From Hyalangium minutum (GTDB lineage Bacteria > Myxococcota > Myxococcia > Myxococcales > Myxococcaceae): 64,000 nt of DNA. The notes below the pieces were generated by a model. It searched no databases. It had not been told where the DNA came from and saw only the letters and a program-made list of their open reading frames with translations. The stretch covers positions 558,001 through 622,000 of the forward strand of contig NZ_JMCB01000002.1 in the NCBI RefSeq assembly GCF_000737315.1. Reading direction: 5' to 3'. The position numbers were made by a program, and so were the translations under genes. Numbering within the stretch: position 1 is the stretch's first letter; each line of letters begins with the position of its first letter. Shown here in pieces: positions 12,564 to 45,865 of the stretch.

Positions 12564-13031
12564 ATGCCCTTCACGCTCACCGTCAACGGCAAAGCCCATG
12601 TCATCGACGCAGAGGAGGACACCCCGCTCCTCTATGTGCTCCGCGATGAGCTGGGGCTGAATGGCGCCAAATACGGCTGCGGTGTGGGCCAGTGCGGCGC
12701 GTGCACGGTGCTGCGAGACGGGGCTCCGCTGCGCTCTTGCTTCGTTCCGGCCTCGTCTCTGGGAGGGCAGGCCATCACCACACTGGAGGGGCTGCGTGCA
12801 CCCAATGGCACGCTGCATCCTCTTCAGCAGGCGTTCCTCTCCGAGCAGGCAGGGCAGTGTGCCTACTGCATCCCAGGCATGATCATGGCTGCGGCCGCGC
12901 TCCTGCGGGAGAAGCCCCGTCCCACCGAGGCGGAGATCCGCACCGCGCTGGATGCCAACCTGTGCCGGTGCGGCTCGCACAATCGCATCGTGCGCGCCGT
13001 GCAGCGCGCTGCCGAGGAGCTGGCCCGATGA
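12564..13031 (+). CDS. (2Fe-2S)-binding small subunit of a xanthine/isoquinoline oxidoreductase (IorA/CoxS family)
   Basis: KYGCGVGQCGACTV and QCAYCIPG...NLCRC motifs; stop overlaps the next start (ATGA). Confidence 0.92.
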   Translation: MPFTLTVNGKAHVIDAEEDTPLLYVLRDELGLNGAKYGCGVGQCGACTVLRDGAPLRSCFVPASSLGGQAITTLEGLRAPNGTLHPLQQAFLSEQAGQCAYCIPGMIMAAAALLREKPRPTEAEIRTALDANLCRCGSHNRIVRAVQRAAEELAR

Positions 13032-15229
13032 GCGTACGCTTCGGACGCCGATCGTTCCTGCAAGGCTCGCTCGTGCTGGCCTTCTCCCTCGCCAGTTCAG
13101 AGGTCTTCGGCCAGAAGCCGGAGGCTTCGAAGCTCCCCAGGGACCTGGAGAAGAACCGCCAGCTCGATGCGTGGATCCGCATCGGCTCGGACGGCAAGGT
13201 CACGCTCAAGACGGGCAAGGTGGAGCTCGGCCAGGGCATTCTTACCGCCTTCGCCCAGCTCTGTGCCGATGAGCTCGACATCGAGCTGTCCCGGCTGGAG
13301 ATCATCTCCGGCAACACCGTCCTCTGTCCCAACCAAGGAGCAACGGCCGGCAGCATGTCCATGCCCGAAGGAGGCAAGGCCGTGCGCGCCGCCGCCGCAG
13401 AGGTTCGCTCCATCCTGGTCTCCATGGCCAGCGAGCACCTGCGCGTCCCGGCGTCCAAGCTGCGGGTGCAGGATGGGACCCTCACGGATCCTTCCAGCAA
13501 GCGCACCGTCACCTACTGGAGCCTCACGGGGGGCAAGGAGCTGAGACGCGAGGCGACGGGCTCTGTCGCTCCCAAGCCCGCCTCCGCTCGGCGCTACTCC
13601 GGCCGCTCGATCCCCCGCAGAGACTTGCCTCCCAAGATCACCGGCGAGGCCATCTTCGTGCACGATCTCCGGCCCGGCTCGCTGGTGCATGGCCGCGTGG
13701 TCCGTGCTCCCTCGTATGGTGCGACGCTCATCGAGGTGGACACCTCTGCCGTGGAGCGGATGCCCGGCGTCGTGAAAGTGGTGCGCGAGGGCAGCTTCCT
13801 CGCCGTCGTCGCAGCCAAGGAGTGGCAGGCCATCCGCGCCGCCGCGAGTCTCGCCCGCGCCGCCCGGTGGCGAGAGCAGGCCGCGCTGCCCGTGGATCCC
13901 TATGCGTGGTTGCTGACGCAGCCCACGCAGGATCTGCCCATCCACACCATCGCGCGCCCGGCGGAGACTGCTCCGGTCCGCACACTGGAGGCAACCTACC
14001 GCCGGCCCTACCAGATGCACGGAGCCATGGGCCCATCGTGCGCCGTGGCCGAGTGGAACGGTGACGTCCTCACCGTTCACACCCACAGCCAGACCGTCTT
14101 TGAGACCACCGAGGCCATCGCGAAGATGCTCGGCCTGCCAAAGGAAAAGGTGCAGGGCCAGCACATGAATGGCGCGGGCTGCTACGGCCACAACGGCGCG
14201 GACGATGCCGCCGCGGATGCCGCCTTGCTCGCCCGCGCGCTGCCCGGCAAGGCCGTGCGCGTGCAGTGGTCTCGCGAGGACGAGCACGCCTGCGAGCCCT
14301 ATGGCTCGGCGATGGTGACCCGGGTTCGCGCGGGAGTGGATGAGCGCGGCCATGTGCTGCAGTGGGACTATGAGCTGTGGTCCACCTCCCACGGCACGAG
14401 GCCCGGAGGTCAGCCCGGCAATCTGCTGGCGGGCCGCTCCCTGGCGACGCCTTTCCCCATGCCTGTCCCGAAGAACGGTGGGCCTCCGAACTACGCGGCG
14501 GATCGGAACGCCATTCCGATCTACACATTCCCTGGCCAGAAGGTGACCACCCACTTCGTGACCGAGATGCCGCTGCGCGTCTCCTCTCACCGCAGCCTGG
14601 GTGCCTACGCCAACGTCTTCGCCATCGAGTCCTTCATGGATGAGCTGGCTCACGTGGCTCACGCGGACCCCATCGAGTTCCGGCTCCGTCAGCTCAAGGA
14701 CGAGCGCGCCAAGGCGGTCATCCTCAAGGCCGCGGAGCGGTTCGGCTGGTCCTCGTATGCCAAGGCGCCTCAGAGGGGGCGAGGGGTGGGCTTTGCTCGC
14801 TACAAGAACTCCGCCAGCTACTGCGCGGTGTGCCTGGAGGTCCGTGTCGATCCTCAGAGCCACGCCGTGCAGGTGGTGCGCGCCGTGCTCGCCGCCGATG
14901 CGGGCGAGGTGGTCAACCCAGATGGGCTCAGCAATCAGCTCGAGGGCGGGCTCATCCAATCCCTGAGCTGGAGCCTCAAGGAGGCCGTCCGGTACGACTC
15001 CCGCCGCATCCTCTCGCGCGACTGGGCCACCTATCCGATCCTCACCTTCTCGGAGGTGCCTCCCGTGGAGGTGGCGCTCATCGATCGTCCGGGCGAACCC
15101 TTCCTGGGCGCGGGAGAAGCCTCCCAGGGCCCCACCGCCGCGGCGCTGGCCAATGCCCTCTTCGACGCCACAGGTACGAGGGTTCGCGAGCTGCCGCTGA
15201 CACCGGAGCGCCTCGCCGCGTCACGGTGA
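13028..15229 (+). CDS. Molybdopterin-binding large subunit, IorB/xanthine oxidase family, Tat-exported
   Basis: RRSFL twin-arginine signal; GKVELGQG, GCYG, RSLGAY, NQLEGG and GAGE motifs. Confidence 0.9.
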   Translation: MSVRFGRRSFLQGSLVLAFSLASSEVFGQKPEASKLPRDLEKNRQLDAWIRIGSDGKVTLKTGKVELGQGILTAFAQLCADELDIELSRLEIISGNTVLCPNQGATAGSMSMPEGGKAVRAAAAEVRSILVSMASEHLRVPASKLRVQDGTLTDPSSKRTVTYWSLTGGKELRREATGSVAPKPASARRYSGRSIPRRDLPPKITGEAIFVHDLRPGSLVHGRVVRAPSYGATLIEVDTSAVERMPGVVKVVREGSFLAVVAAKEWQAIRAAASLARAARWREQAALPVDPYAWLLTQPTQDLPIHTIARPAETAPVRTLEATYRRPYQMHGAMGPSCAVAEWNGDVLTVHTHSQTVFETTEAIAKMLGLPKEKVQGQHMNGAGCYGHNGADDAAADAALLARALPGKAVRVQWSREDEHACEPYGSAMVTRVRAGVDERGHVLQWDYELWSTSHGTRPGGQPGNLLAGRSLATPFPMPVPKNGGPPNYAADRNAIPIYTFPGQKVTTHFVTEMPLRVSSHRSLGAYANVFAIESFMDELAHVAHADPIEFRLRQLKDERAKAVILKAAERFGWSSYAKAPQRGRGVGFARYKNSASYCAVCLEVRVDPQSHAVQVVRAVLAADAGEVVNPDGLSNQLEGGLIQSLSWSLKEAVRYDSRRILSRDWATYPILTFSEVPPVEVALIDRPGEPFLGAGEASQGPTAAALANALFDATGTRVRELPLTPERLAASR

Positions 15230-21737: not shown

Positions 21738-22000
21738 GAGGGTTCCCGGAAGAGGAGAGAGACGAGCGTCGCCGAGGAACGGGCCAGCTCGCAGAAAGTT
21801 CTCAGCGGCCCGCTCTGGGCGAGTCCTTCGAATGCCCCTTGCTTCTCAAAGCATGGATTGGCATTTCTGTTTTAACTGGTTTCAGGGGCCAGGGTCCCGC
21901 ATGACGCCTTTTGCCTCGCGTGAGGCAATCTGCCTCAAACGCCCCAAGCCTCCCTCCAGACGCTGAGTGCCAGCGATTCCCGAGGCTTGCTGGGACAGGC

Positions 22001-22017
22001 TGTAAACACCTGATACA
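22001..22017. promoter_or_regulatory. Putative enhancer (UAS) for a sigma54 activator
   Basis: TGT-N11-ACA (TGTAAACACCTGATACA), about 90 bp upstream of a -24/-12 element. Confidence 0.4.
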
Positions 22018-22105
22018 TTTTTCGCATGAGGCTGTGAGACATGCATGTGCCAGCCCTTTGGGGAAGGTGCACGCCAACCGCCTGAATTACGAGGATTTTT
22101 GGGAT

Positions 22106-22121
22106 TGGCCCGGTCCCTGCT
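22106..22121 (+). promoter_or_regulatory. Putative sigma54 (-24/-12) promoter of the M4 protease gene
   Basis: TGGCCCGGTCCCTGCT: GG-N10-GC spacing, close to TGGCACG-N4-TTGCT, about 50 bp before the start. Confidence 0.55.
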
Positions 22122-22171
22122 TTGTCCGGAGCGTTCCATCGGCGCCTCGCCGTGGACAGGAGGATCCCCCA

Positions 22172-24079
22172 TTGGTTCGCAATCGCATCGTTGCTGCTCT
22201 GCTCGCCACTCTCCCGCTCGCTGCCTGCGAGATGGCTGACCCCGACACCGCTGCTCCGGGGACGGAGAAGGTAGATGAGCTGGCGATCGGAGATGTGCAG
22301 TCCGCGCTCGCGGCGCTGCCGAGCGCCCGCGTGCTGGGCACTCACGCCAACGGCGTTCCCTACATGCTCGACGGCCGCCTGGGCACGGCGTCCGGCTCGG
22401 TGCAGGGGCTGGCGGGGCTGAACGCGAGCGACCAGGTGAGCCAGGCGCTCGCGAGCATCGCTCCGGCGTTCCGGCTGAACGCTTCGGATCTGGCCGTGCG
22501 CCGCGTCCGCACGGATGAGCAGGGCGTCACCCACATCCGCTACGCGCAGCTGAAGAACGGCCTGCCGGTGGTGGGCGAGGAGCTCATCCTCCACGTGAAC
22601 AAGGACGGCGCCATCGTCGCGGCCAACGGCACGGCGCGCGACGGCGAGCTGGTTCCCTCCAAGCCGGCCATCTCCGCGCTGGCGGCGGTGTCCGCGGCCC
22701 TGCGCTCCACGGTGGGCCGTCACATCGAGACCGAGGGCGAGGCGCGCCTGGTGTACCTGCGCACCGGCTCGGACGAGAAGCTGAAGCTGGCCTACGAGCA
22801 GATGGTGGTGGGCGAGGGCCAGGAGCTGCCCATCCGCGAGCGCGTGTACGTGAGCGCGGCGGACGGCTCCATCCTGGAGCGCCGCACGGAGATCTTCGCG
22901 GCGCTCAACCGCGCGCTGTACAGCGCCAACAACGGCACCTCGCTGCCGGGCACGCTCAAGCGCTCCGAGGGCGGTGCGGCCACGGGTGACAACCACGTGG
23001 ACACCAACTACGCGAAGCTGGGCGGCACCTACAACTGCTACAAGAACAACTTCAACCGCGACTCGTACAACAACGCGGGCGCGCAGCTGAAGAGCACGGT
23101 GCACTACAGCAGCAACTACGTGAACGCCTACTGGAACGGCACCCAGATGGTGTACGGCGATGGCGACGGCGTGAACAGCACCCAGCTGGGCCTGGACGCG
23201 GACGTCACCACGCACGAGCTGACGCACGCGGTGACCAGCTCCGAGTCCAACCTCACGTACTCGGGTGAGTCCGGCGGCCTGAACGAGGCCATGTCCGACA
23301 TCTTCGGCGCCTACTGCGAGAGCTACGACAGCGGCACCTGGAGCACCGGCGCGGACATCTGGAAGGTCGGCGAGGACATCTGGACCCCGTCCACCGCGGG
23401 TGACGCGCTCCGCTACATGGACGACCCGGCCAAGGACGGCGTGTCCAAGGACTTCTGGGTGTCGGGCGTCGGCAGCGCGGACGTGCACTACACCTCGGGC
23501 ATCGCGAACCTGGCGTTCAAGCTGCTGTCCACGGGCGGTACGCACCCGCGCGGCAAGTCCACCGTCAGCGTGACGGGCATCGGCGTGCAGAAGGCCGGCG
23601 CCATCTTCTACAAGGCCAACGTGGACCTGATGACGGCCTCCACCACCTTCGCCCAGGCGAAGACGTACACGGAGCAGGCGGCGGCCTCGCTGGGCTACAC
23701 GACGGCGGAGCAGGCCTCGGTGTCTGCGGCGTGGCAGGCGGTGGGCGTGGGCGCGCCCATCACCGCCATCGCGCTGACCAACGGCGTGGCGAAGACCGGC
23801 CTGGCGGGCTCCACGGGCTCGCAGACGTTCTACTCGCTGGCGGTTCCCTCGGGGAAGGCCGTGACCTTCGCGATGAGCGGTGGCACGGGTGACGCGGACA
23901 TGTACGTGAAGTTCGGCGCGCTGCCGACCACCACCGCGTACGACTGCCGCCCGTACCTCTCCGGCAACGCCGAGACGTGCAACATCGCGGCGAAGACCAC
24001 CGCGGGCACGTTCTACATCATGCTGAACGGCTACAGCACGTACTCGGGCGTCTCGCTCAAGGGCTCCTACACGCCGTGA
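22172..24079 (+). CDS. M4 family metallopeptidase lipoprotein with a C-terminal PPC domain
   Basis: TTG start after a GGAGG SD; LPLAAC lipobox; HELTH, GGLNEAMSD, DVHYTSG; PPC domain (GGTGDADMYVK, YDCRPY). Confidence 0.92.
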   Translation: MVRNRIVAALLATLPLAACEMADPDTAAPGTEKVDELAIGDVQSALAALPSARVLGTHANGVPYMLDGRLGTASGSVQGLAGLNASDQVSQALASIAPAFRLNASDLAVRRVRTDEQGVTHIRYAQLKNGLPVVGEELILHVNKDGAIVAANGTARDGELVPSKPAISALAAVSAALRSTVGRHIETEGEARLVYLRTGSDEKLKLAYEQMVVGEGQELPIRERVYVSAADGSILERRTEIFAALNRALYSANNGTSLPGTLKRSEGGAATGDNHVDTNYAKLGGTYNCYKNNFNRDSYNNAGAQLKSTVHYSSNYVNAYWNGTQMVYGDGDGVNSTQLGLDADVTTHELTHAVTSSESNLTYSGESGGLNEAMSDIFGAYCESYDSGTWSTGADIWKVGEDIWTPSTAGDALRYMDDPAKDGVSKDFWVSGVGSADVHYTSGIANLAFKLLSTGGTHPRGKSTVSVTGIGVQKAGAIFYKANVDLMTASTTFAQAKTYTEQAAASLGYTTAEQASVSAAWQAVGVGAPITAIALTNGVAKTGLAGSTGSQTFYSLAVPSGKAVTFAMSGGTGDADMYVKFGALPTTTAYDCRPYLSGNAETCNIAAKTTAGTFYIMLNGYSTYSGVSLKGSYTP

Positions 24080-24105
24080 TGTGCTGAGCGCTAACTGAGT
24101 GACTG

Positions 24106-24143
24106 CACCCCCGGGGGATTCTCCTCCCCGGGGGTGTTTCATT
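24106..24143 (+). terminator. Rho-independent terminator
   Basis: Perfect 11-bp stem CACCCCCGGGG-N9-CCCCGGGGGTG followed by TTTCATT, just after the protease stop. Confidence 0.7.
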
Positions 24144-24215
24144 TGCGGGGGAACGCTGCGCGGGGAGCTGCTTCTCACGCTGACGCGGCCCTACGCCAGA
24201 GGTAGGCTGCTGCTC

Positions 24216-25619
24216 ATGGACCTTCCCCCCTTCCAGGCATCGCACCCGGCCCTGCTCCCTCCGGGGACGGTGATAGGGGACTGGCGCGTGGAGGACTGGG
24301 CAGGCCGCGGCGTCTACGGCGCCGTCTACCGCGCGGCGCCGCTGCGAGCGGGGCCCGTCGCACCCGTGGCCCTCAAGATGGCGGTGCATTCAGAGGATCC
24401 CCGCTTCGTCCGGGAGGTGGAGCTGCTCTCCCGCTGCGACCACCCGAGCATTCCGAGGCTGTTGGGGCAGGGCTCGTGGCAGTCGCCCTCGGGCACCGTG
24501 TACCCTTTCTATGTCATGCAGTGGGTGGAGGGCGTGCGGCTGTACGCACAAGCCCGGCGCCACCCTGTCACTCCGGAGCAGGTGCGGCGCTGGCTGGCCC
24601 AGCTTGCGAGCGCCCTTGCAGTCCTGCATGCCCAGGGCGCCGTCCACCGCGACCTGAAAGGGGACAACGTGCTGGTGCGCCGCGCCGACGGGCGGGCCGT
24701 GCTCATGGACTTCGGCACGTGCTTCTACCCCGGGGCCGCCACGCTCACACCCCCGCTGGGGTTCCCTGGCACGCCGGCCTACCGCGCTCCCGAGTCCTGG
24801 CTCTTCGAGCTGCAATTCGAGCGCGACGCGATGGCCCGCTACCGCGCCACTCCGGCCGATGACCTCTACGCCCTGGGAGTCACCGCGTGCAGGCTCCTCA
24901 CGGGCGAGTACGCCGAGCCGGCCAACGCCTTCCAGGATGAGCACGGCACGTGGCACTTCGAACGAGTCGTGACACCGCCCGGGTTCCAGGATGACTCCCG
25001 GGTGGAGCCTTCGCTGCGCGCCGTGGTTCTGCGGTTGCTGTCGCTGCGTCCCGAGCAGCGAGGCACCGCGGAGCAACTGGCCGCCGAGCTGGAACAGGCT
25101 ACCGGGCCCCACAAGCCTGCGCAGCCCGTACGCGTCACAGTCCCTGAAATGCGAAAGTCTCTCGCCCGGCGGAGGTGGCCCTGGGCCGCCTTGGCCGCGG
25201 CGAGCGGGGGGTTGGCCGTGTGCGTATGGCCGGACGCTTCCCGTGAGTGGCTGGAGAAGGTGACCCTCGCCTGCATCGCCCCCGCCGGAGGGGACTCGCC
25301 GAGTCCGAGTACCAAGACACGAGGGCTCGCGGAGGAAGCAGCGGCCACATCCACGCAGCCAGCGCCTGCGGCTTCACCTCCGGACGGAATCGCCGAGGAC
25401 ACGCCGCCCAAGCCCCTGCTAGGGCAAACGCGGCCGGATGAGAAGGGGCGCTGTCCTCGCAGGTGGCAGGTCTCCCTCAATGGAGCTTGCTGGGCACAGT
25501 TCGCGCATGAGCGCGAGGCGTGTGATCTCATCAACGGGCAGATGTTCAAGGGCCTCTGCTACGTGCCAGTTCTTCTTCCGGGACGTAGCCCCACCTCCAG
25601 CCCCACGAACAACCCCTGA
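24216..25619 (+). CDS. Hanks-type Ser/Thr protein kinase with TM segment and Cys-containing C-terminal domain
   Basis: GRGVYG, VALK, HRDLKGDN, DFG, APE and DLYALG motifs; TM WPWAALAAASGGLAVCVW. Confidence 0.9.
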   Translation: MDLPPFQASHPALLPPGTVIGDWRVEDWAGRGVYGAVYRAAPLRAGPVAPVALKMAVHSEDPRFVREVELLSRCDHPSIPRLLGQGSWQSPSGTVYPFYVMQWVEGVRLYAQARRHPVTPEQVRRWLAQLASALAVLHAQGAVHRDLKGDNVLVRRADGRAVLMDFGTCFYPGAATLTPPLGFPGTPAYRAPESWLFELQFERDAMARYRATPADDLYALGVTACRLLTGEYAEPANAFQDEHGTWHFERVVTPPGFQDDSRVEPSLRAVVLRLLSLRPEQRGTAEQLAAELEQATGPHKPAQPVRVTVPEMRKSLARRRWPWAALAAASGGLAVCVWPDASREWLEKVTLACIAPAGGDSPSPSTKTRGLAEEAAATSTQPAPAASPPDGIAEDTPPKPLLGQTRPDEKGRCPRRWQVSLNGACWAQFAHEREACDLINGQMFKGLCYVPVLLPGRSPTSSPTNNP

Positions 25620-27644: not shown

Positions 27645-28979
27645 CTACCCCGCAGCGCGGATGGACTCGCGGAGGACCTCGGTCATGCGGCGCAGCTCGT
27701 CCGGCGTGGAGATGAACGGCGGGCCCATGGCGAGGATGTCGCCCGTGAAGCGGAACAGCACGCCCCGCTTGAGCGCCTCCTCGAACACCTTGAGGGCGCG
27801 CAGGCCAGGCTTGCCCTCGATGGGCGCCAGCTCCACCGCCGCCGCCAGCTGGCAGTTGCGGATGTCGATGACGTTGGGCTCGCCCTTCAGCGAATGCGCC
27901 GCGTCCTCCAGCACCGGCACCAGGGACTTCACGCGCTCGTTGATGCCCTCGGTGGCCAGGATGTCCAGCGTGGCGTGCGCGGCGGCCACCGCCAGCGGGT
28001 GCCCCGAGTACGTGTACCCGTGGAAGAACTCCACCGCGTGCTCCGGGCCCGTCATCAGCGTGTCGTACAGGTCCTTGCGGGCGATGACGCCGCCCATGGG
28101 CACCGTGCCGTTGTTCACGCCCTTGGCGAAGGTGATCATGTCGGGCGTCACGCCGAAGTGCTGCGCCGCGAAGTGGGTGCCCATGCGGCCAAAGCCGGTG
28201 ATCACCTCGTCGAAGATGAGCAGGATGCCGTTCTTGGTGCAGATCTCCCGCAGCCGCTCCAGGTAGCCCTTGGGCGGGACGATGACGCCGGTGGAGCCCT
28301 GCATGGGCTCGACGATGACGGCGGCGATGGTGGAGGCGTCATGCAGGGCGATGAGCCGCTCCAGCTCGTTGGCCAGGTGCGCGCCCCAGGTGGGCTCGCC
28401 CTTGGTGAAGGCCATCTCCTTGGGGTTGTACGTGTGGGGCAGGTGGTCCACGCCCGTCAGCATGGCCGAGGCGTACATCTTCCGGTTGGCCACCATGCCG
28501 CCCACGGAGATGCCGCCAAAGCCCACGCCGTGGTAGCCGCGCTCGCGGCCGATGAAGCGGGTGCGGCTCGCCTCACCCTTGGTGCGGTGGTAGGCCAGGG
28601 CCATCTTCATCGAGGTGTCCACCGCCTCGGAGCCCGAGTTCACGAAGAACACCTGGCCCATGCCCGCTGGCGCCATGCCGACGATGCGCTCGGCCAGCTT
28701 GAAGGTGGGGCCGTAGCCCATCTGGAACGCGGGGCTGTAGTCCACGCTGTCCAGCTGCTGCTTGACGGCCTCGACAATCTTGGGGTGGCGGTGGCCCAGC
28801 CCGCAGCACCACAGGCCGGACAGGGCGTCGAAGAGCTTCTCGCCCTCGGTGGTCCAGTAGTAGGCGCCCTCGGCCTTGGCCAGCATGCGGCGCGAGTGGT
28901 GCTGCTTGAAGTAGCGGTTGTGGGTGAACGGCATCCAATACGCCGCCAACTCCCGATCGTTCGGCTCGAGGCTTCCCAT
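27645..28979 (-). CDS. Class III PLP aminotransferase (omega-amino acid/beta-alanine:pyruvate type)
   Basis: YWMPFT, GLWCCGLGH, NSGSEAVD, YHG, DEVITGFGR, FAKG (PLP lysine), GYTYSGHP. Confidence 0.9.
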   Translation of the reverse strand: MGSLEPNDRELAAYWMPFTHNRYFKQHHSRRMLAKAEGAYYWTTEGEKLFDALSGLWCCGLGHRHPKIVEAVKQQLDSVDYSPAFQMGYGPTFKLAERIVGMAPAGMGQVFFVNSGSEAVDTSMKMALAYHRTKGEASRTRFIGRERGYHGVGFGGISVGGMVANRKMYASAMLTGVDHLPHTYNPKEMAFTKGEPTWGAHLANELERLIALHDASTIAAVIVEPMQGSTGVIVPPKGYLERLREICTKNGILLIFDEVITGFGRMGTHFAAQHFGVTPDMITFAKGVNNGTVPMGGVIARKDLYDTLMTGPEHAVEFFHGYTYSGHPLAVAAAHATLDILATEGINERVKSLVPVLEDAAHSLKGEPNVIDIRNCQLAAAVELAPIEGKPGLRALKVFEEALKRGVLFRFTGDILAMGPPFISTPDELRRMTEVLRESIRAAG

Positions 28980-29115: not shown

Positions 29116-32100
29116 CTACGCGGGGGGAGGGGCGGAAGCCGTCAGCCCCTCGAAGTGGCCCTTGAGGCGTCCCGCGAAGCGGTCTGCCGCCTCGGGCGGG
29201 AGCTGGGAGCACGTCTGCAGGTGGAGGCTGCCGTCGAGCACGTAGCAGTAGACGGCGAGGGCCGGGATGTCCTGCAGCACCTTGACGCTCCGCATCTTGA
29301 AGCGCCCGAGGTTGGAGTCGAGAACGCCCAGGTTGACGATGAAGAGGCGGCCCGGCGCGGTGAACATCTCCCACACCCCGGGGATCCAGAGCAGCTTGGC
29401 TACCGCTCCAAAGCCGTCCGCCATCTTGTTGTAGTGCGCGGGCTCCATGCCCGCGTAGGTCCGCTTGTCGACATAGGCCTGGTGTTCCTGGTGGAAGTGG
29501 CGGGCCAGCTCCCAGAAGCCGGTCGCCGGGCCGACGTCCAGCACGAACTTCGGATAGGTGGCGTAGTACCCCAGCGTGTCAGTCGGGAGGTTGAGCAGCG
29601 GCCGTGCGTCGAACGAGCCCACGAGCATCAAGCGGTGGGGCTTGGGGGCCGGGCAGAAGAGCTCCCGCGCGGTGAGGCACAGCGCCGCCGACAGGGCTCC
29701 GGTCACCGAGCTCTGCTGGCGGGCCGCGGTGCCCAGCACCTGGCGCGTCGCGTCTCGGCCCATCGTCACCATGCGGGACGCGCCTGCCACCGAGATCTCC
29801 TGATCCCGCTTCTTCTGGGCTCCGAACGGCGCCTTGAACTTGTTCACCCGGAAGACCTCCAGGGGGGAGAGGACCTCCTGGCCGGTCTTGGCGACACCCT
29901 CCTCGGGGTGAAGGGCTACCGGAGCCAGGCCTCTCGCCGGTAGCTGGGAGAACAGGTCCTCGCGCGCGGCCGGGAGCGGCTGGGGCTTGACGTCCACAGG
30001 CGCCCCGGTCAGCAGCCGCTCGTAGATGTCGAACAGATCGCGCACCAGCATCACGAAGGCGTGAACCTCGAGGTAGCAGTGCCAGATGATGGGGATGACT
30101 TGGTAGGCCTCGGGCTCGCCCTTCGAGCGGATGAAGAGGATCTTCTTCTGCCCGGGGTCGCGCAGGTGGCGAGCGACGAGCTGCTCCAGCGGCTCCGTTC
30201 CCATCTCGGGGAGGAACACGAGCTCCAGCTGGCGGCCCGGCTGGTACTCCAGGAAGAACTCGCCGCGCTTCTTCTCGACGATGGAGGCACCCAGATAGGG
30301 GTAGCGCTTCTCCAGCAGCGCGGCCGCCTGCCGCATCCGCTCCGGATCGATGGAGCCCTCGATGTCCATCACGGGGTTGATGTGCAGGAGCCCCCGGCGG
30401 TTGGCCTGATAGACCAGGGACTCGAAGGCACCCAGGCGCCGCTGCACGGTCGCGCTCCAGGAGGCCAGCAGCGCGCCGTTCAGGAGCGGAGGGGCTTCCT
30501 GGCGGGTGGGCACGTCACCCTGGGGCTCGGTGGGCGCCTGCGCGATCGCCTGGGCGATCTTCTCGATCGTGTTGTGCTGGACCAGGAAGTTCGGGTCCAG
30601 CTTGAGCTGGAACTCTGTCTCCAGCTCCCGGAGGAGCGTGATGAACAAGATGGAGTCCAGCCCCAGGCTCCACAGGGTCGCCGTGGCGGGCAGCGGGCCC
30701 TCGGCCGACACGCTGATCCCCTGGACGATCTTCGAGACACGCTCGACGACGCCGGTGCGAGGACGGGCGCGCGGGGCGGGAGCCGCCGCTCCGGGCGTGA
30801 CGCCGTCCCGAGGAGCCTTCTGGGCCTCCCGGTTCTTCAGGCGGAGCTTGTCCACCTTGAAGGTGCCCGTCATCGGCATCTCGTCGATGAACTCCACCTC
30901 GACAGGGACCTTGTAGCCCGCCAGGTGTCCCCGGCAGAAAGCCGTCACCTCTCGCGGGGACAGGGAGTGTCCTGACCGGAGGCGGATGACCGCCTTGACC
31001 ACCTCTCCCGCCGTGGGGTTTGGGATGCCGTAGACTGCGGCCTGCTGCACCGCCGGATGGAGCGCGAGGACACGCTCGACCTCGCTCGGGTACACGTTCT
31101 CCCCGTACGAGATGATCATGTCCTTCTTGCGGCCCGCGATGGTCAGGTAGCCGTCGGGCCGGATCGTCGCGAGGTCTCCTGTCTTGAACCAGCCATCCTG
31201 GAAGGACTCCCGGGTCGCGGGGCCGTCATTGAAGTAGCCGTTGAAGACCGTCAGGCCGCGGATCCACACCTCCCCTGGCGTCTGGTTGTCGCGAGGCACG
31301 TCCGCGCCCCGGTCATCGACGATGCGCACCTCCATGAGCTTGAACGGCCGGCCGGAGGTGGCGATCAGCTCGAACTGCTCGGCGCGGGTGCGCTGGCGGT
31401 GTTCCTCTGAGAGGAGCGACATGGAGATCTTTCCGCAGCACTCCGTCATGCCGTAGGACATGAAGATCTCGCAGCCGAAGAGCTGGATGAGCTTGTCCAC
31501 CGAGGCGGCGTCGAGGGCCGAGCCTCCGCAGGAGAGGATCCGCAGCCGGCTGAAGTCGTGCGTTCCCACATCGGGGCTGTGGATGAGGAAGTGGGCCGCG
31601 GCCGCGGCGAGGTTCGTGCAGGTGATGCGCTCGCTGGCGAGCAGCCGCAAGAAGTGGGTGGGGTCCGGCTCCGAGACGATGACGTGCTGTCCACCCAGCC
31701 ACGTCAGTGCGTAGATCGCGAAGGCATCCACCACATGGTACATGGGCGAGAAGTGCCCCCAGACATCCTCGCCGGTGATGCGCATCTCCTCGGCGGTCGC
31801 GATGGCGTGGTGGAACACCTGGCGATGGGAGAGGAGCACGCCCTTGGGGAAGCCCGTCGTGCCGCTCGTGTAATAGAGCTGGAACGCATCGAACTCGGTT
31901 CCCCGGTTCGGGACGAAGGGAGCGGCTGAACCGGCGAGGGCCTCCTCGTAGCCGCGCGAAGTGGCGAGCTTCGAGGCCTGCTCGGGGAGCGTCTGGCGCT
32001 CCGGGCCGCTGTCGACCCACAGGACGCCGCTGAGGTTCAGCCCTCCGAGCCCCACGGCTTCTGACAGGGTCTGCGCGAAGTCCGCCGAGGTGATGATCCA

Positions 32101-35100
32101 GCTCACGCCCGACTGCTGGAAGATGTGGTGCACCTCTCTCGCGGTGAGCCTCACGTTGACGTTCAGCACGACGGCTCGCAGCCCGGACGCAGCGAAGTGC
32201 GTCTCGATGACCTCCGAGCGGTTGCGGAGCATCACCCCCACGACCTTGCCGGGGCCCACGCCTTGCTCGCGGAGGAACTGCGCGAGCCGCGACGCCCGGG
32301 CATGCAGCTCGCCATAGGTGTGCTGCCGGGCGCCGTCCCGGATCGCCACACGCTCCGCGAAGTGCTCCTTCGCACGCTCGATGACGGCCCACATGTCCGC
32401 GGGCGGTCCCTCGATGGAAGGGAGCTGAGGAGTCTTTCTGGGCACGGGGACTGCCGCCGACGTGAGCGCCCCTCGGAAGAAGTATGACTTCTTCTCGGGA
32501 TCGACGAGGCACTCGATGAGCGTGCTCTGCCCCGCCTCCCAGGCGGCACGCGCGGCCTGAACGCACGGGGCCAGCTCCTCGGGGGTGGACACCGAGGCGA
32601 AGCGCAGGCCCGGGTGCCGGTCCTTGAACGCGCTCAGATCGAACTCGGCGAGCTGGGTGCAGACCTCCGGCCGGTTCGTCGCCCGTTGAATGTCGCCGAT
32701 CATTCCCAGGCGGCGGTCCCGGAGCACGACGGTGATGATGGCCGGGGCGCCGGGCTCGCCCAGCAGGCCCTTGAGCCCCGTCATCAGGAACGCGCCATCG
32801 CCTACGAACGACACCACGGGTACCGACGGATGCGACCAGGCGGCGCCAATCGCGGCGGGGACCGAGTACCCCATGCTGTTGTAGTCCGCAGGGCAGAGGA
32901 ACCGGTCCGGCGCGGTGAGCCGGAGCGCCTCGATCGCGTGAATCGTCCCATTGCCCGAGTCCGCGCAGAAGATCGTCTCGGGAGGCAGCTGTGCCTGGAC
33001 CGTGCGGACGAGCTCATAGGGGTCCAGCCCGCTCCCATGCTGCTTCCGGCTGCGGAGGTCCTCTTCCACCCAGGCGTGGGCCGCCCGGAGCCGCTCCACG
33101 AGGCCATCCGCACGGCGCGGGAAGTCACCGCGGTAATGCCTGTCGAGGTGCTTCAGCAAGGCCTGGAGGAAGGCCTTGGCATCCGCAGTGATACCGATCG
33201 CGGCCGCCGCCTTGTTGGGGACCGCCGGGTCGATGTCCACGTGGAAGCAGTACGCCGGGAAGCGGGCACGGTAATGAGCACTTCCCAGCTCACTGAGCCG
33301 TGCTCCGAGGATGAGCGCGCCGTCGCACTCCTCCGCGAGGGTCTTCATGGGGGGAGGGGACAGGGGACCGAAGCCGCTCCACAACCACAAGGGGTCCGTC
33401 TCGGGGAACACGCCCTTGCCGGAGAGCGTCGAGGCGACGACGGCGCCTGTCCGGTGAGCCAGCTCCACGAGCTCGGCGGAGCCCTCGCGTGCGCCGCGTC
33501 CCACGAAGATCACGGGCTGCTTCGCGCGGATGAACATCTGCGCCACGGCATCCAGCGCGGCCTCCGTGGGAGTGGCGGCTGGAGCCTCGGGTTGGACCTT
33601 CAAGGCGACAGCGGACGCAGCGGTGGACTCCGCCGTGAAGGTGGCCGGGCACACGAGACAGACAGGGCCCGGAGCCGAGGCCGTGCTGCGCTGGACCGCT
33701 TCCTTCAGGGCGCCCGCCAGCTCCTCGGCCGAGGCGATGACTGTCACCGACTTCGACAGGTGTCTCAGGGAGCCCAGCCACGGCTCGGGAGGAGAGGAGG
33801 CCACGATCAGGACGACGAGGGGAACCTGGTCGAGGTGGGCCTCACCGACTCCCGACAGGACCGAGGAGAGCGCCCACTCTTCCGGGAGGATGAGGGCAGC
33901 GGGCTGCTTGGAGGAGCGTGAGGCTCCGTCCGCGACAAATCCCAGGTTCTGGTCATGGCGCACGGCCTTGACCGGCACTCCGTCCGAGGACAGGGCCGCG
34001 GCCGCGGCCTGCAGCCGTCCGTCCCCGGCGATGAACACGGAGCCAAGCCCGCTGCCCTGGACGCCTTGCTTGAGGGCTGAGAGCCACGAGGCACTGAGGG
34101 CGATGGGGCTGGGAGCCACCACCCGGGGCGCGGCCTGCTCGACCTCGCAGATGACGACCTCGGGAGTGCGCATCGTCTCCACGAGCTCCCGAGCCAGAGA
34201 GGCATCGTCCTGGGCTCGTAGGAGCCGGACGCGGGTCAGCTTCGCGATGAGCTCGACGGTGCCCTCTGGAGCGGAGCCGCGCTCGACCCGAATCACGAGG
34301 GGGAGGCGCCGCTCGGCCGCCAGGGTGAGTTCGGGCGCGAAGGCCATGAGCGAGTCGGCATCCGTGAGCGCGATCGCAAGCTGCTGCGAGAACGCGGCGC
34401 CCAACGCCAGTGCCACCGCGCCTCGGCGAGAGGGGACGCCCTGGTGGTTCACATCGCTGACGGCGTAGAGCCCACTGCGGCTCACGGCAGCCGCACACGT
34501 CTCCAGCGCGCGGGCCAGCTCCGGAGTGAGGTCGGCGTTCTTCCACTCGGGAGTCTTCGCGGAGGGGCTCACGGCCCGTGGGGCGCCGCGGAAGACCGAT
34601 GGACGCCGGAGCAGGTGCATGGGCACCTCGAGCGCACACGGACCGGGCTCGCCGCCCAGCGCTGTCTCCACGAGCCGTGCCACGACTTCGTGCACATCAT
34701 CGGTCTCGGTCAGGCGGTGGGTCGCCTTGCAGAGCGGCGCGAGGACGCCCAGGTTGTCCACATCATGCAGTTGGTACGAGCGGCCCTCGTCCCGCGCGCA
34801 GCCCGTCGTGAGGACGAGGAGCGGCGTCCGGGTGCGAGACGCGAACTCGATGCCCGGCAGTGCGTGGGTGATGCCGGGGCCGCCGATGACGTTGACGCAG
34901 CCGAGCTGGCCGCTGCTCTGGTACTGCCCTGCGGCGAGGTACGCCGCGCTCGCCTCGTTGGCGATGAGCACGGGCTCCAGCACGCCGCGCCCGAGCATCT
35001 CGTACAGGCGCAGGTTCTGGACTCCCGGAATCCCAAAGCAGCGAGTGATTCCCGCGGCCCGGAGTGCCATTCCGAGGAGCTGGGTGGTGTCGTAGGTCTC

Positions 35101-35193
35101 GTTGGGCTGGGGCTGCTCGAACAGCTCACTTTGTATCCGCATGCTTCGCCTCGCATCTCCCATGCTTCCCGCCATGCCGGGAGAGATAACCAT
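29116..35193 (-). CDS. Multidomain biosynthetic protein: duplicated ThDP-dependent (ALS-like) unit, acyl-adenylate ligase, carrier protein, condensation/PapA5-like acyltransferase
   Basis: FGIPG and NEASA (PYR), GDGAFLM (PP), YYTSGTTGFPKG, YGMTE, TGD and GRKKD (ANL ligase), LGLDSIL (Ppant serine), and a C-terminal CAT-fold-like region (WHCYLEV, VNLG). 2025 aa uninterrupted; the start could also be 35163 or 35141. Confidence 0.85.
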   Translation of the reverse strand: MVISPGMAGSMGDARRSMRIQSELFEQPQPNETYDTTQLLGMALRAAGITRCFGIPGVQNLRLYEMLGRGVLEPVLIANEASAAYLAAGQYQSSGQLGCVNVIGGPGITHALPGIEFASRTRTPLLVLTTGCARDEGRSYQLHDVDNLGVLAPLCKATHRLTETDDVHEVVARLVETALGGEPGPCALEVPMHLLRRPSVFRGAPRAVSPSAKTPEWKNADLTPELARALETCAAAVSRSGLYAVSDVNHQGVPSRRGAVALALGAAFSQQLAIALTDADSLMAFAPELTLAAERRLPLVIRVERGSAPEGTVELIAKLTRVRLLRAQDDASLARELVETMRTPEVVICEVEQAAPRVVAPSPIALSASWLSALKQGVQGSGLGSVFIAGDGRLQAAAAALSSDGVPVKAVRHDQNLGFVADGASRSSKQPAALILPEEWALSSVLSGVGEAHLDQVPLVVLIVASSPPEPWLGSLRHLSKSVTVIASAEELAGALKEAVQRSTASAPGPVCLVCPATFTAESTAASAVALKVQPEAPAATPTEAALDAVAQMFIRAKQPVIFVGRGAREGSAELVELAHRTGAVVASTLSGKGVFPETDPLWLWSGFGPLSPPPMKTLAEECDGALILGARLSELGSAHYRARFPAYCFHVDIDPAVPNKAAAAIGITADAKAFLQALLKHLDRHYRGDFPRRADGLVERLRAAHAWVEEDLRSRKQHGSGLDPYELVRTVQAQLPPETIFCADSGNGTIHAIEALRLTAPDRFLCPADYNSMGYSVPAAIGAAWSHPSVPVVSFVGDGAFLMTGLKGLLGEPGAPAIITVVLRDRRLGMIGDIQRATNRPEVCTQLAEFDLSAFKDRHPGLRFASVSTPEELAPCVQAARAAWEAGQSTLIECLVDPEKKSYFFRGALTSAAVPVPRKTPQLPSIEGPPADMWAVIERAKEHFAERVAIRDGARQHTYGELHARASRLAQFLREQGVGPGKVVGVMLRNRSEVIETHFAASGLRAVVLNVNVRLTAREVHHIFQQSGVSWIITSADFAQTLSEAVGLGGLNLSGVLWVDSGPERQTLPEQASKLATSRGYEEALAGSAAPFVPNRGTEFDAFQLYYTSGTTGFPKGVLLSHRQVFHHAIATAEEMRITGEDVWGHFSPMYHVVDAFAIYALTWLGGQHVIVSEPDPTHFLRLLASERITCTNLAAAAAHFLIHSPDVGTHDFSRLRILSCGGSALDAASVDKLIQLFGCEIFMSYGMTECCGKISMSLLSEEHRQRTRAEQFELIATSGRPFKLMEVRIVDDRGADVPRDNQTPGEVWIRGLTVFNGYFNDGPATRESFQDGWFKTGDLATIRPDGYLTIAGRKKDMIISYGENVYPSEVERVLALHPAVQQAAVYGIPNPTAGEVVKAVIRLRSGHSLSPREVTAFCRGHLAGYKVPVEVEFIDEMPMTGTFKVDKLRLKNREAQKAPRDGVTPGAAAPAPRARPRTGVVERVSKIVQGISVSAEGPLPATATLWSLGLDSILFITLLRELETEFQLKLDPNFLVQHNTIEKIAQAIAQAPTEPQGDVPTRQEAPPLLNGALLASWSATVQRRLGAFESLVYQANRRGLLHINPVMDIEGSIDPERMRQAAALLEKRYPYLGASIVEKKRGEFFLEYQPGRQLELVFLPEMGTEPLEQLVARHLRDPGQKKILFIRSKGEPEAYQVIPIIWHCYLEVHAFVMLVRDLFDIYERLLTGAPVDVKPQPLPAAREDLFSQLPARGLAPVALHPEEGVAKTGQEVLSPLEVFRVNKFKAPFGAQKKRDQEISVAGASRMVTMGRDATRQVLGTAARQQSSVTGALSAALCLTARELFCPAPKPHRLMLVGSFDARPLLNLPTDTLGYYATYPKFVLDVGPATGFWELARHFHQEHQAYVDKRTYAGMEPAHYNKMADGFGAVAKLLWIPGVWEMFTAPGRLFIVNLGVLDSNLGRFKMRSVKVLQDIPALAVYCYVLDGSLHLQTCSQLPPEAADRFAGRLKGHFEGLTASAPPPA

Positions 35194-35199
35194 GTCCCG

Positions 35200-35409
35200 T
35201 CAGGGGACCTCTTGTCGTGCGAACCCACGGAAGACCCCGGTGGGTCTCCCCTGCTCATCCCACGAGACCACGTGAAGGGTCTGCCGGCCGTCCCGGGTAC
35301 CCTTCCTTCGGGCGAAGACCTGCACCGGTCCTCGGGGGACAGCGTAGAGATCCGCGGCCTCGATCTCCAGGGGCAGCAAGGTCCTCGCGCAGGACATCAC
35401 TCCCTTCAC
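35200..35409 (-). pseudogene. Remnant of the C-terminal half of a PKS dehydratase (hot-dog) domain
   Basis: LLPLEIEAADLY...VQVFAR...HVVSWDEQGRP..VFRGF matches the PKS-DH C-terminal pattern; the catalytic His and Asp portion is absent. Confidence 0.55.
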
Positions 35410-36092
35410 CAGGCGATGGGCCCGCCCCGGAAGTCGAGGAAGGTTCCGCTGTCCTGAAGGGTGAGCCGGTCGATGAGGCCGATGAGGCCCGCGGCGGACT
35501 CGGCCACGGGTGTCGGAGCCTCCGAGCCGCCCATGTCGGTCTGCACCCAGCCGGGGCTGAGCACCACGGCGATGAGTCCCTCGGCGCGCAGGTCCTGCGC
35601 CAGCGAGCGTGTCGCCATGTTCAGCGCGGCCTTGGACATGCGGTAGCCATAGCTGCCGCCGGAGGTGTTATCGGCGATGGAGCCCAGCCCTGAGGTGATG
35701 TTGGCGATCTTCGCACCTGCGGAGCGGCGGAGCATGGGCAGCAGGGCGGAGGTGACGCGCAGCGCGCCGAGCGCGTTCACCTGGAAGGTCCGGGCGGCGT
35801 CATCCAGATCGAGCGCTTCGAGGCTGTCGGGCCGGCTTCTCACGCCCGCGTTGTTGATGAGCACATCGATGGGCTCGGAGACGGTGGACGCGAACGTGCG
35901 GACACTGGCCTCCAGAGACACATCGCAGGCGTGGAGTTGGAGCCGGCCGCCCGAGGGAGCCAGGAGGGCCGCGAGCTCGCGGGCGCGTCCGGGTGTCCGG
36001 GCACCGGCGTAAACGGAGTCACCGCGGGCGAGGTACTGACGGGTCAGCTCCAGTCCAATGCCGCGGTTGGCTCCAGTGATGACGATCTTCAT
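35406..36092 (-). CDS. Short-chain dehydrogenase/reductase, CsgA (C-factor)-like
   Basis: MKIVITGANRGIG, NNAG, YRMSKAALNM, PGWVQTDMGG; about 228 aa, matching CsgA p25 by eye along its length. Confidence 0.88.
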   Translation of the reverse strand: MKIVITGANRGIGLELTRQYLARGDSVYAGARTPGRARELAALLAPSGGRLQLHACDVSLEASVRTFASTVSEPIDVLINNAGVRSRPDSLEALDLDDAARTFQVNALGALRVTSALLPMLRRSAGAKIANITSGLGSIADNTSGGSYGYRMSKAALNMATRSLAQDLRAEGLIAVVLSPGWVQTDMGGSEAPTPVAESAAGLIGLIDRLTLQDSGTFLDFRGGPIAW

Positions 36093-36481
36093 GGCGGCGA
36101 TCTTACTGATGCCCTGGAGGTAGAGGTGCCCAAAGTGCTCACGCTGGCTCGCCCCCTCGTCCTCCATGCTCACCATGCGAGCGAGTGCAAAATACTTCGC
36201 CACCTTCGCGTCATGGACGCTTCAGGGAGCGCTGCGGAATGACACTGGGAGACGGACGGCACGGCGGCGATGAAGGGCAACGATCCGGATGCATGCGCGC
36301 TCACGTACCCCCGCGTCCCTGAAAGGTTCCCAGAATTGAAGCGGGAGTTCCCTGTCTCTCTCGATGAGCGAGTTTCCAGGTTCACCGAAGGGGTAGGGGA
36401 CAGGGGCTTACTTTGGGTTCGGCGCCATGCGAGGCGGGTTGTGCTAGGACTTGGGTGAGCGACCGCTGCCCACCGTACACC

Positions 36482-44207: not shown

Positions 44208-44558
44208 TTACCCGGGGTCTAGAGCCCAGGTGCCTTCTTCCCAGCGCTTTAAGGCCTCTGAGGCTGAGAAGGAAACCAGTCCTTCTCCCTGAGCCGCGTC
44301 TTTCAACACTGCTTGGGCTTCTTCAGTTCGATGACGAAGGAGGAAGGCTGCTGCCTTGACTCGAACGTCCAGGCGGGAATGCGTGAACAGAGCCGCGAGC
44401 GCATCTCTTCCGGAGTTGCCCTGCGCGCACAGCTTGTCGAATGCCGCATTCACCTGCTTGGCGTGTTTGTTGGCGGTCTTCGAGTCTCCTCGGCTGATGG
44501 CATCCGTCTGAGCAGCGGCGTGGCGGGCAAACGCCTCCACGAGTTTCTCAAGGGTCAT
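44208..44558 (-). CDS. Putative immunity protein (DUF2019-like, HEAT-like helices)
   Basis: MTLEKLVEAF...DVRVKAAAFLL; ATGA-coupled to the toxin stop. Confidence 0.7.
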   Translation of the reverse strand: MTLEKLVEAFARHAAAQTDAISRGDSKTANKHAKQVNAAFDKLCAQGNSGRDALAALFTHSRLDVRVKAAAFLLRHRTEEAQAVLKDAAQGEGLVSFSASEALKRWEEGTWALDPG

Positions 44559-45865
44559 TGTCCAACTCCCCAGGTTCCATTCCGGATCTGCTCGAGGGCC
44601 TGCAATCCGAACTGGCGCTGGGTTCCATAGGATTGCGTGCTCAGCCACTGCCGCACCGTCAGGCTCCTTGAGCCAGTGATTTCCTGCTGGATTGACGAGT
44701 AGAACCCACTGACACGGGTGTGTAGGCCTTGTTCCAGCGGGATGACGTTTTCGGTGTTGTGCAGGGCATGAGGACCGAACCGGTCCACGTTACCTGGTGT
44801 TTGCTCGACGATGTGGTGCCACTGCTTGCCTTTTCCTGCAGAGCCCAAGGCACTCCTGAGGCCGCTGTACGAGCCCCACGATCGGAAAGCAGAAGGATGC
44901 TCCCCGGCTGCAGCTACGCTACCGCCCATACTCTGGGCCGTCATGGCGACGGCTGTTGCAGGCAGGGAGATGACGATGGTGCTTCCGACAACGGCCACCG
45001 AAGTCACCTGTCCCACGTTCGCGAGGTTGAGCCCCAGCCGCGCGGCCCCAGCCGCCGCTTCCGAGCAGCTGGGCAGCATCGGAAGGCGGGAGGCCAGCAA
45101 GACGGCGCCCCCAGTCATTCCCTGGCTCACCACCAGCGTCACTGCGAGCACGAGGACACGTGCGACCTTGGGGCCGATCCTCTTCGCAAAGCGCTGGCTT
45201 GCGTGCTCCAACTCCTTCCATGTCGTGGCTCGGTCGGTGGTCCACTTCAACTCATGGCTCGCGTCGACCACCTCCAGAAAGGTCTCCGCGCCCAGGTAGA
45301 CCAACAGCAGCACGGAGATGAGAGCCGCCGCCTTGGTGAAGACGGGCTCGGGGTTGGCTGCCAAGACGGCCCAGGTGATGAGCCCCGTCGCAATGACGGT
45401 GTAGAAGAGCTGAGGCGCCAGGGTGTCTTGCACCGCTTGGGAGATGCTCTCCTTCAGGGGATCCAGTGACAGGCCCAGAGCAACCCCCAGTTTGTCCCAC
45501 TCGCTCAGGCCCATCATGTCATCGAGCAAAGAGAGGCAATGTTCGCTGCGCTGGCCGGGCTCACAAAGACCGCCGAAGCTCTTGCTCATGAGGCGCTGCC
45601 AACGAGTGTCTTCTCTGGGGCCTGGGTGGGAGGCGCGCACCAGCCAGCCTTGCTGTGCAGGACGGAGCTTCAGCGGCGCGTTCAGTACCAACTGTGTCAG
45701 CGACTCCTCGAACGCTTCTGTGTCCACCTTCACGGACTGCTGCGAGGAGGACGGTCTGTACTCCCAGCGCGGACCCTGGCCCGTGTCGAGGCGAACCAGA
45801 GGTGGGGTGGCGCACGCGGAGAGCAGAGCCAGGAGAAGGACTGCAGCAGTCAGCCGAGATGCCAT
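44555..45865 (-). CDS. sitA5: SitA5-type polymorphic lipoprotein toxin with a C-terminal His-rich nuclease-like domain
   Basis: LLSAC lipobox, VRLDTGQG N-terminal motif, hydrophobic middle region, C-terminal WHHIVEQ...HNTEN...LH. Confidence 0.7.
   Translation of the reverse strand: MASRLTAAVLLLALLSACATPPLVRLDTGQGPRWEYRPSSSQQSVKVDTEAFEESLTQLVLNAPLKLRPAQQGWLVRASHPGPREDTRWQRLMSKSFGGLCEPGQRSEHCLSLLDDMMGLSEWDKLGVALGLSLDPLKESISQAVQDTLAPQLFYTVIATGLITWAVLAANPEPVFTKAAALISVLLLVYLGAETFLEVVDASHELKWTTDRATTWKELEHASQRFAKRIGPKVARVLVLAVTLVVSQGMTGGAVLLASRLPMLPSCSEAAAGAARLGLNLANVGQVTSVAVVGSTIVISLPATAVAMTAQSMGGSVAAAGEHPSAFRSWGSYSGLRSALGSAGKGKQWHHIVEQTPGNVDRFGPHALHNTENVIPLEQGLHTRVSGFYSSIQQEITGSRSLTVRQWLSTQSYGTQRQFGLQALEQIRNGTWGVGQ

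Follow-up and report, generated by a model that had tools for sequence, protein, structure and literature searches.

Thiamine diphosphate (ThDP) enzymes of the DC superfamily are textbook obligate two-site dimers: each cofactor sits in the PP domain of one subunit and depends for its activation on a glutamate from the partner's PYR domain, while a PYR domain cannot serve the PP domain of its own subunit. The need for communication between the two sites (half-of-the-sites, alternating reactivity) is an old question. Acetohydroxyacid synthase (AHAS), pyruvate oxidase, and BbmA (1YBH, 6LPI, 8X3X, 1POX) are single PYR-MID-PP chains, MID being the middle (TH3) domain, which need to form a homodimer and carry two equivalent sites. 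Here we analyze a megasynthase gene of Hyalangium minutum that lies in a stretch of 64,000 nucleotides of contig NZ_JMCB01000002.1 (the window) and whose first ~900 residues are two fused copies of a ThDP enzyme. The folds (PYR, MID, and PP), the Glu in PYR, and the GDG plus second Mg ligand in PP are those of the three enzymes above; in contrast to them, the units are fused, the first has no MID, and opposite half-sites are defective. We consider it likely that residues ~30–910 are an acetolactate-synthase/pyruvate-oxidase-type (DC-superfamily) enzyme folded as an intramolecular pseudo-dimer, that is, a fused pseudo-heterodimer with one ThDP-Mg per chain between the first PYR domain (PYR1) and the second PP domain (PP2), and a dead pseudo-site between the degenerate first PP domain (PP1d) and the second PYR domain (PYR2).

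Several other systems resemble this arrangement in part. In PFOR and DXP synthase, the PYR and PP domains that make up an active site come from a single chain (Duggleby classification, DXPS structure), but these enzymes belong to other superfamilies, have other domain orders, and form homodimers with two live sites and no degenerate half-sites; the analogy is functional only, and all sequence and fold matches of the ThDP module studied here are to the DC superfamily. In sulfopyruvate and phosphonopyruvate decarboxylases, PYR is joined straight to PP by a short linker, as in PYR1-PP1d, but these enzymes are active and oligomeric, whereas PP1d is predicted to be unable to bind the cofactor. A head-to-tail dimer, fused or paired, with one catalytic composite site and a degenerate symmetry-related one is known from mammalian adenylyl cyclase C1/C2 and from those ABC transporters in which one nucleotide site is degenerate; their folds and chemistry are unrelated, and the comparison is again an analogy only.

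A hybrid nonribosomal peptide synthetase (NRPS)/polyketide synthase (PKS) of the order 'tpp-A-KR-PP-KS-...' is described from Karenia brevis contig 34829, where the N-terminal IlvB-like ThDP region was noted as a 'TPP-binding domain', with no mention of duplication or a pseudo-dimer (PMC5725682). Compared by the published description only, its domain order is that of two relatives introduced below, P0074 of Chromera velia and the metagenomic P0071. Our literature search on BbmA/CsmA, pseudo-dimeric ThDP enzymes, and assembly-line ThDP domains returned this 'tpp' mention and general reviews only. BurA, which we had suspected of being a further case, was set aside because its reported architecture has no ThDP domain.

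Domain map and reciprocal decay of the half-sites

The megasynthase open reading frame (ORF; 29116..35193, minus strand, 2025 aa) encodes, in order, PYR1, PP1d, PYR2, MID, PP2, an ANL adenylation domain, a carrier domain, and a PapA5-like acyltransferase. There are at least two in-frame ATGs at its 5' end. The true start is probably ATG 35142 (Met18) and not 35193: GAGG stands 6 nt 5' of this ATG, and the RefSeq orthologue WP_158620025.1 begins at the equivalent Met. Residue numbers follow the longest ORF throughout, as they did in the original prediction made for this locus, and would be 17 too high with a start at Met18. Sequence searches against NCBIfam and PDB found a lone PYR domain at 32–200 and a complete ALS-like PYR-MID-PP unit at 382–903; the boundaries were then placed with profile hidden Markov models (HMMs) for PYR, MID, and PP made from 186 single-unit relatives. 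The domains of the ThDP module are as follows.

34594..35100, minus strand: PYR1, aa 32–200 (PYR HMM at 38–198, 160 bits; BbmA 8x3x, E 5e-22)
34090..34551, minus strand: PP1d, aa 215–368, degenerate and shortened (hhalign against the PP profile)
33574..34050, minus strand: PYR2, aa 382–540, degenerate (PYR HMM at 400–528, 58 bits; AHAS alignment)
33133..33561, minus strand: MID (TH3), aa 545–687 (MID HMM at 545–687, 145 bits; 40–48% identity to single-unit relatives)
32464..33024, minus strand: PP2, aa 724–910, intact diphosphate-binding domain (PP HMM at 724–910, 140 bits)

An exhaustive search of protein representatives recovered a family of ~9 diverged relatives with the same N-terminal layout before the adenylation domain, from Corallococcus, Chromera, Cymbomonas, and eukaryote-like metagenome contigs. 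They are P0069 (Corallococcus), P0071 (metagenomic, 5021 aa), P0074 (Chromera velia), P0082 and P0094 (both metagenomic), P0101 (Cymbomonas tetramitiformis, KAK3277853.1), P0201, and the fragments P0038 and P0039. In databases the relatives are named 'AMP-binding protein' or 'Carrier domain-containing protein', the latter being the name of the orthologue.

The nature of the segment between the two PYR domains decides whether the first unit has a PP domain at all. Taken singly, the window sequence is weakly PP-like there (BLAST against PP2, E 0.064; PP HMM in two colinear pieces, E 0.05 and 0.001), and a homologue search with aa 192–480, which cover PP1d and the start of PYR2, gave no match. 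A profile built over residues 205–368 in 11 family members gave an hhalign probability of 98.3% against the PP profile (E 2e-14, 143 columns), versus 2.9% for MID and 4.1% for PYR, and the possibility that the segment is a middle domain was rejected on the MID value. The first unit (PYR1-PP1d) has no MID domain. The PP HMM also matches the inter-PYR segment significantly in several relatives, with 30 bits in P0071 and three colinear pieces in P0038. In addition, an AlphaFold2 (AF2) sub-model of aa 26–375 (pLDDT 76, pTM 0.77) was aligned by Foldseek to whole AHAS, HACL, and BbmA chains over 484–566 columns, with TMq 0.66–0.76; since PYR1 is only half of the query, such a score would require a PP fold in PP1d, placed as the same-subunit PP.

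In DC-superfamily enzymes, the catalytic Glu lies in PYR and a GDX25-30N motif in PP (PMC2831816), the Glu activating the ThDP cofactor (PMC11350588). The module of the window contains a PYR with Glu (PYR1), a PP with the GDG-X(25-30)-N-type motif in an Asp variant (PP2), and a MID between PYR and PP in the second unit, whereas the corresponding parts of PP1d and PYR2 are damaged. In the profile register, the G-D-G position of PP1d is T277-D278-A279 (34357–34365); both glycines and the second Mg ligand are missing, Arg306 standing at the ligand position, and the ~30 residues after Arg306 are deleted, so that the TDA, the Arg, and the deletion together leave PP1d without the PP motif. The Asp of GDG (D278) is retained in Corallococcus PP1, and the complete GDG is found in the PP1 of none of the family members, the replacements being NPR, TDR, ANA, STA, and similar.

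In PYR1, Glu80 (codon 34954–34956) is aligned to the catalytic Glu, and the GGPGITH loop is present; 'NE' and 'GGPG(I/V)TH' occur in all nine members having PYR1. In PYR2, the place that the catalytic Glu has in Arabidopsis AHAS (rhdq versus rheq) and in the single-unit relatives is taken by Asp414 (33952–33954), and the GGPG loop is replaced by PEEWALSS, leaving PYR2 with neither the activating Glu nor the cofactor loop; the helix LSGVGEAHLD is kept. The loop is missing from the PYR2 of every family member. The residue at the Glu position of PYR2 varies: Corallococcus, P0071, and P0038 have Asp there, P0074, P0094, and P0101 still have Glu, and in P0082 and P0201 it is Pro or Ala.

PP2 carries DSGNG, the GDG at 798–800 (32794–32802) and, after 26 residues, Asp826 (32716–32718) at the second Mg-ligand position. 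DSGNG, GDGAFLMTG, and the second-ligand Asp (in L-R-D, L-N-D, or L-C-D) are found in the PP2 of the window protein, P0071, P0074, P0082, and P0094. In most ThDP enzymes the residue in the place of Asp826 is Asn, the second of GDG..NN; because the closest single-unit relatives share the Asp, we regard the exchange as a clade trait and not as damage. Klebsiella catabolic acetolactate synthase likewise has Asp at the second ligand position. In P0101 and P0201, the GDG of PP2 is lost (GEE, or nothing) while the five-domain scaffold is kept, and from their motifs both cofactor sites of these two proteins look dead.

Overall, these data agree with the original prediction, made from the window sequence. 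The order it had proposed (PYR1, degenerate PP1, PYR2, MID, intact PP2) is confirmed by the HMMs, the hhalign profile match, and the AF2 sub-model, and the four motifs it had quoted lie at 79–83 (NEASA, with Glu80), 277–281 (TDADS), 412–415 (RHDQ, with Asp414), and 798–802 (GDGAF). The replacement of Glu by Asp414 in PYR2 is borne out by the alignments to Arabidopsis AHAS and the single-unit relatives. The degenerate PP1 with TDADS in place of GDG is borne out by the profile match, and the register given above is a refinement of it.

Selection, closest relatives, and origin of the tandem unit

The two sets of half-sites also differ in their rate of evolution. Orthologues are present in Corallococcus sicarius and C. 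terminator with 77–78% identity. For each domain we give below the dN/dS among three Corallococcus orthologues and the identity of the window protein to the eukaryotic members.

PYR1: dN/dS 0.13–0.15; identity 27–44%
MID: dN/dS 0.17–0.22; identity 33–40%
PP2: dN/dS 0.11–0.18; identity 34–41%, and 21% to P0101, which has lost the GDG
PP1d: dN/dS 0.33–0.43; identity 4–17%
PYR2: dN/dS 0.22–0.28; identity 13–28%

PP1d and PYR2 are thus relaxed yet under purifying selection, as expected of a structural core.

The same division is seen in the closest single-unit relatives, which are identical for PYR1, MID, and PP2 (P0070, P0072, and P0073, ~40% each) and not so for PYR2 and PP1d. Since the competent parts have their closest relatives in common, they behave as one enzyme interrupted by a decayed PP-PYR pair. 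These relatives, together with P0001, are named 'thiamine pyrophosphate-binding proteins' and share with the window protein, besides ~40% identity in the three competent domains, the motifs YQLHDVD, GDGAFLMTG, L(R/N)D, and a C-terminal DYS..T.F. Unlike it, they lack the inserted PP-PYR pair as well as the adenylation, carrier, and acyltransferase domains, and some are encoded beside a GMC oxidoreductase. Internal duplication is a plausible origin of the tandem unit, judging from the sequences, as the clade motifs FVADG..R and LSGVGEA.LD are still present in PYR2.

Two side observations concern the relatives. Immediately before the genes of the single-unit proteins P0001 and P0002 stand, in each case, a GMC oxidoreductase gene and a small, ~145-aa ORF (L006 6059–9722; L007 3048–6734), the ORF in L006 being Gluconate_2-dh3-like, which suggests an ancestral pathway of alcohol oxidation followed by the ThDP step. 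The metagenomic, G+C-rich P0038 (L004 150–6700; L005 568–7114) is colinear with the window protein in frame-switching pieces and runs on into ketoreductase (KR), ACP, and ketosynthase (KS) domains; it looks like a eukaryotic gene with introns.

Arrangement of the five domains in one chain

An AF2 model of aa 26–915 from a 29-sequence alignment (pLDDT 88.3, pTM 0.91) shows a compact five-domain body, and within this single chain the relative placement of all five domains is confident. The linker from PP1d to PYR2 is short, with pLDDT 81–87. In a Foldseek comparison with PDB, a contiguous stretch of 556–603 columns fits the subunits of AHAS, BbmA, CDH, and POX with TMt 0.71–0.83; only PYR2-MID-PP2 is long enough for such a fit, which places PYR2 in the same-subunit position. 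Two whole-query alignments, with PYR1 and MID-PP2 on 8xod_A and 8xod_C, reach no more than TMt 0.56, with an rmsd of 17.6 Å, and this poor fit indicates that the same-subunit position beside PP2 is not occupied by PYR1. As rough arithmetic on approximate dimensions, which is not a test, ~175 residues displaced by ~30 Å together with ~355 residues at ~3 Å give an rmsd of ~17 Å, and ~30 Å is approximately the displacement of the neighboring PYR in a dimer.

On this basis we propose that PYR1-PP1d would act as pseudo-subunit A, without a middle domain, and PYR2-MID-PP2 as pseudo-subunit B. Given the rule of the superfamily stated at the outset, PYR2 as the same-subunit PYR cannot serve PP2, and a ThDP on PP2 must be completed by the other PYR, of which PYR1 is the only competent one. 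PYR1, with Glu80 and the GGPG loop, and PP2, with GDG..D, would be the sole competent halves and hold a single ThDP-Mg at their interface, while PP1d/PYR2 would be the dead symmetry-related site, retained as a structural core only. The exact PYR1-PP2 contact, and with it one ThDP per chain, should follow from this predicted arrangement. The original prediction had described a tandem unit with reciprocal decay, arisen by internal duplication, in which PYR1 pairs with PP2; PYR1/PP2 is indeed the only complete PYR/PP pair according to the profiles, the pattern in the relatives, dN/dS, the shared closest relatives, and AF2/Foldseek, and the duplication itself stays at plausible.

Several points weigh against the pseudo-dimer. 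The AF2 run was made on a monomer and is hence blind to intermolecular arrangements. The Glu of PYR2 is retained in three members (P0074, P0094, and P0101), so it has not been lost throughout the family, even though none of the three has a live PP1. The loss of the PP2 GDG in P0101 and P0201 means that the scaffold can persist without catalysis. Finally, Asp can partly stand in for the activating Glu in some ThDP enzymes.

The first of these points leaves room for a trans-completed homodimer, in which PYR1 Glu80 would reach across, through a domain swap, to activate the ThDP on PP2 of the partner chain, with two sites per dimer. The characterized DC-family enzymes are all at least dimers, KS-containing PKS modules are generally dimeric, and the eukaryotic relatives have KS domains downstream; a second chain would be invisible to the monomer run. 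We nevertheless hold this arrangement to be unlikely, as the pTM of 0.91 means that five domains pack confidently within one chain, the linker between PP1d and PYR2 is short and well predicted, and the canonical four-domain core of two PYR and two PP domains is complete without a partner.

The same eukaryotic relatives bear on the purpose of the fusion, which the original prediction had seen in letting the enzyme work inside a megasynthase without homodimerization. Because they carry the same module before KS-containing PKS modules, this purpose is weakened, and avoidance of homodimerization cannot be the sole reason for the design.

A conventional enzyme with an accessory domain would instead consist of a PYR2-MID-PP2 homodimer with Asp414 as a weak activator, PYR1-PP1d being a regulatory, docking, or second-substrate-binding appendage. 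With a TMt of up to 0.83, PYR2-MID-PP2 does by itself fold like a canonical subunit, and the acid position of PYR2 is Asp or Glu in six of eight members, but the acid is Pro or Ala in the other two and the GGPG cofactor loop is gone from PYR2 in every member. The evolutionary rate of PYR2 is about double that of PYR1, and it is PYR1, not PYR2, that co-evolves with MID and PP2; moreover, strong purifying selection maintains all catalytic hallmarks of PYR1, for which an appendage would have no use. We consider this reading very improbable. That the ThDP region binds no cofactor and is a structural or dimerization element only is highly unlikely: the PP2 GDG is also missing in P0101 and P0201 and the family members are all uncharacterized, but Glu80, GGPG, DSGNG, GDG, and the Asp ligand are intact in the window protein and most members, and the dN/dS of PYR1 and PP2 (0.11–0.18) is no higher than that of the adenylation domain.

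Adenylation, possible off-loading, and the surroundings of the gene

The proposed intramolecular pseudo-dimer is followed in the megasynthase by three further domains, and two other genes adjoin it.

30814..32388, minus strand: ANL adenylation/acyl-CoA-ligase-like domain, aa 936–1460 (PRK06187)
30514..30756, minus strand: carrier (T) domain, aa ~1480–1560 (GLDS serine 1514, 30652–30663)
29119..30426, minus strand: C-terminal PapA5-like acyltransferase, condensation fold (NCBIfam PapA5 and PDB 1q9j, weak match)
35406..36203, minus strand: SDR oxidoreductase directly upstream of the megasynthase; pathway membership uncertain
27645..28979, minus strand: omega-aminotransferase, AptA-like, directly downstream (672 bits versus a cut-off of 500); pathway membership uncertain

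The adenylation domain scores 438 bits with NCBIfam PRK06187 (cut-off 476) and contains the core motifs YTSGTTGFPKG, GWFKTGD, and GRKKDMI; with the phosphopantetheine serine of GLDS at 1511–1514, the ANL core motifs and the carrier serine of an NRPS-like A-T pair are both present. The match of the last domain to PapA5 is weak (E 6e-9, 35 bits versus a cut-off of 396; PDB 1q9j, E 0.03), and its W-H1705-CYL-E1709 (WHCYLE) aligns with the HHxxxD of PapA5 (HHCMAD), the catalytic His being kept and Asp replaced by Glu. The adenylation domain and the ThDP module are co-inherited from bacteria to algae, as in the eukaryote-like homologue of L004 (39% identity). A KR follows in the eukaryotic versions, and in the window an SDR is encoded next door.

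As to the reaction, TIGR00118 (acetolactate synthase large subunit) scores the whole protein at 228 bits and the second unit at 161; both are far below the cut-off of 538, and the name acetolactate synthase is therefore unwarranted. The closest PDB relatives are carboligases and lyases (BbmA 'HKA synthase', HACL, and AHAS). The chemistry is more speculative than the architecture: the module probably performs decarboxylative carboligation of 2-oxo acids. A possible, still tentative pathway is that the PYR1/PP2 site would form a labile acid by decarboxylative carboligation, the co-inherited adenylation domain would capture the acid and load the carrier domain, and the PapA5-like domain would off-load the product from the carrier.

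Conservation of the DNA is limited to the gene and ~210 nt upstream: window 29113–35404 matches L001 9783–16060 and L002 9775–16035 (C. sicarius and C. terminator) at 80–81% identity, with unrelated flanks, so that the gene appears as a self-contained cassette in variable surroundings. The SDR and the aminotransferase were rejected as established cluster members, since neither adjoins the C. sicarius or C. terminator orthologue; PfaA-like KS genes lie upstream of the Corallococcus orthologues instead. There are no further PKS or NRPS genes near the megasynthase in the window. SitA5-family polymorphic-toxin ORFs occur at 44555–45865 of the window (minus strand), within ~10 kb of the megasynthase, and at L001 16411–17817, directly downstream of the C. 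sicarius orthologue. The window has a G+C content of ~68% and also contains genes for a CglD gliding-motility lipoprotein, a molybdopterin (xanthine-dehydrogenase-type) oxidoreductase, an M4 metalloprotease, and a Ser/Thr kinase (2607–5786, 12692–15229, 21911–24079, and 24099–25619, all on the plus strand).

More speculatively, the module may be a natural, obligately single-site ThDP enzyme and a conserved 'starter-unit factory' of myxobacteria and photosynthetic eukaryotes (chromerids, prasinophytes, and probably dinoflagellates), likely spread by horizontal transfer, in which PYR1/PP2 would make an unstable acid derived from 2-oxo acids, for example an alpha-hydroxy-beta-keto acid, and pass it directly to the fused adenylation domain.

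If this last reading is true, DC-superfamily ThDP catalysis does not need two communicating active sites. A naturally occurring chain in which one site is live and the other dead would be a ready test case for active-site communication, as well as a template for engineered monomeric, fusable ThDP carboligases. Several algal and alveolate PKS/NRPS megasynthases begin with 'tpp-A', so far annotated as TPP-binding or AMP-binding only; the present analysis marks this start as a distinct conserved module with defined catalytic residues.

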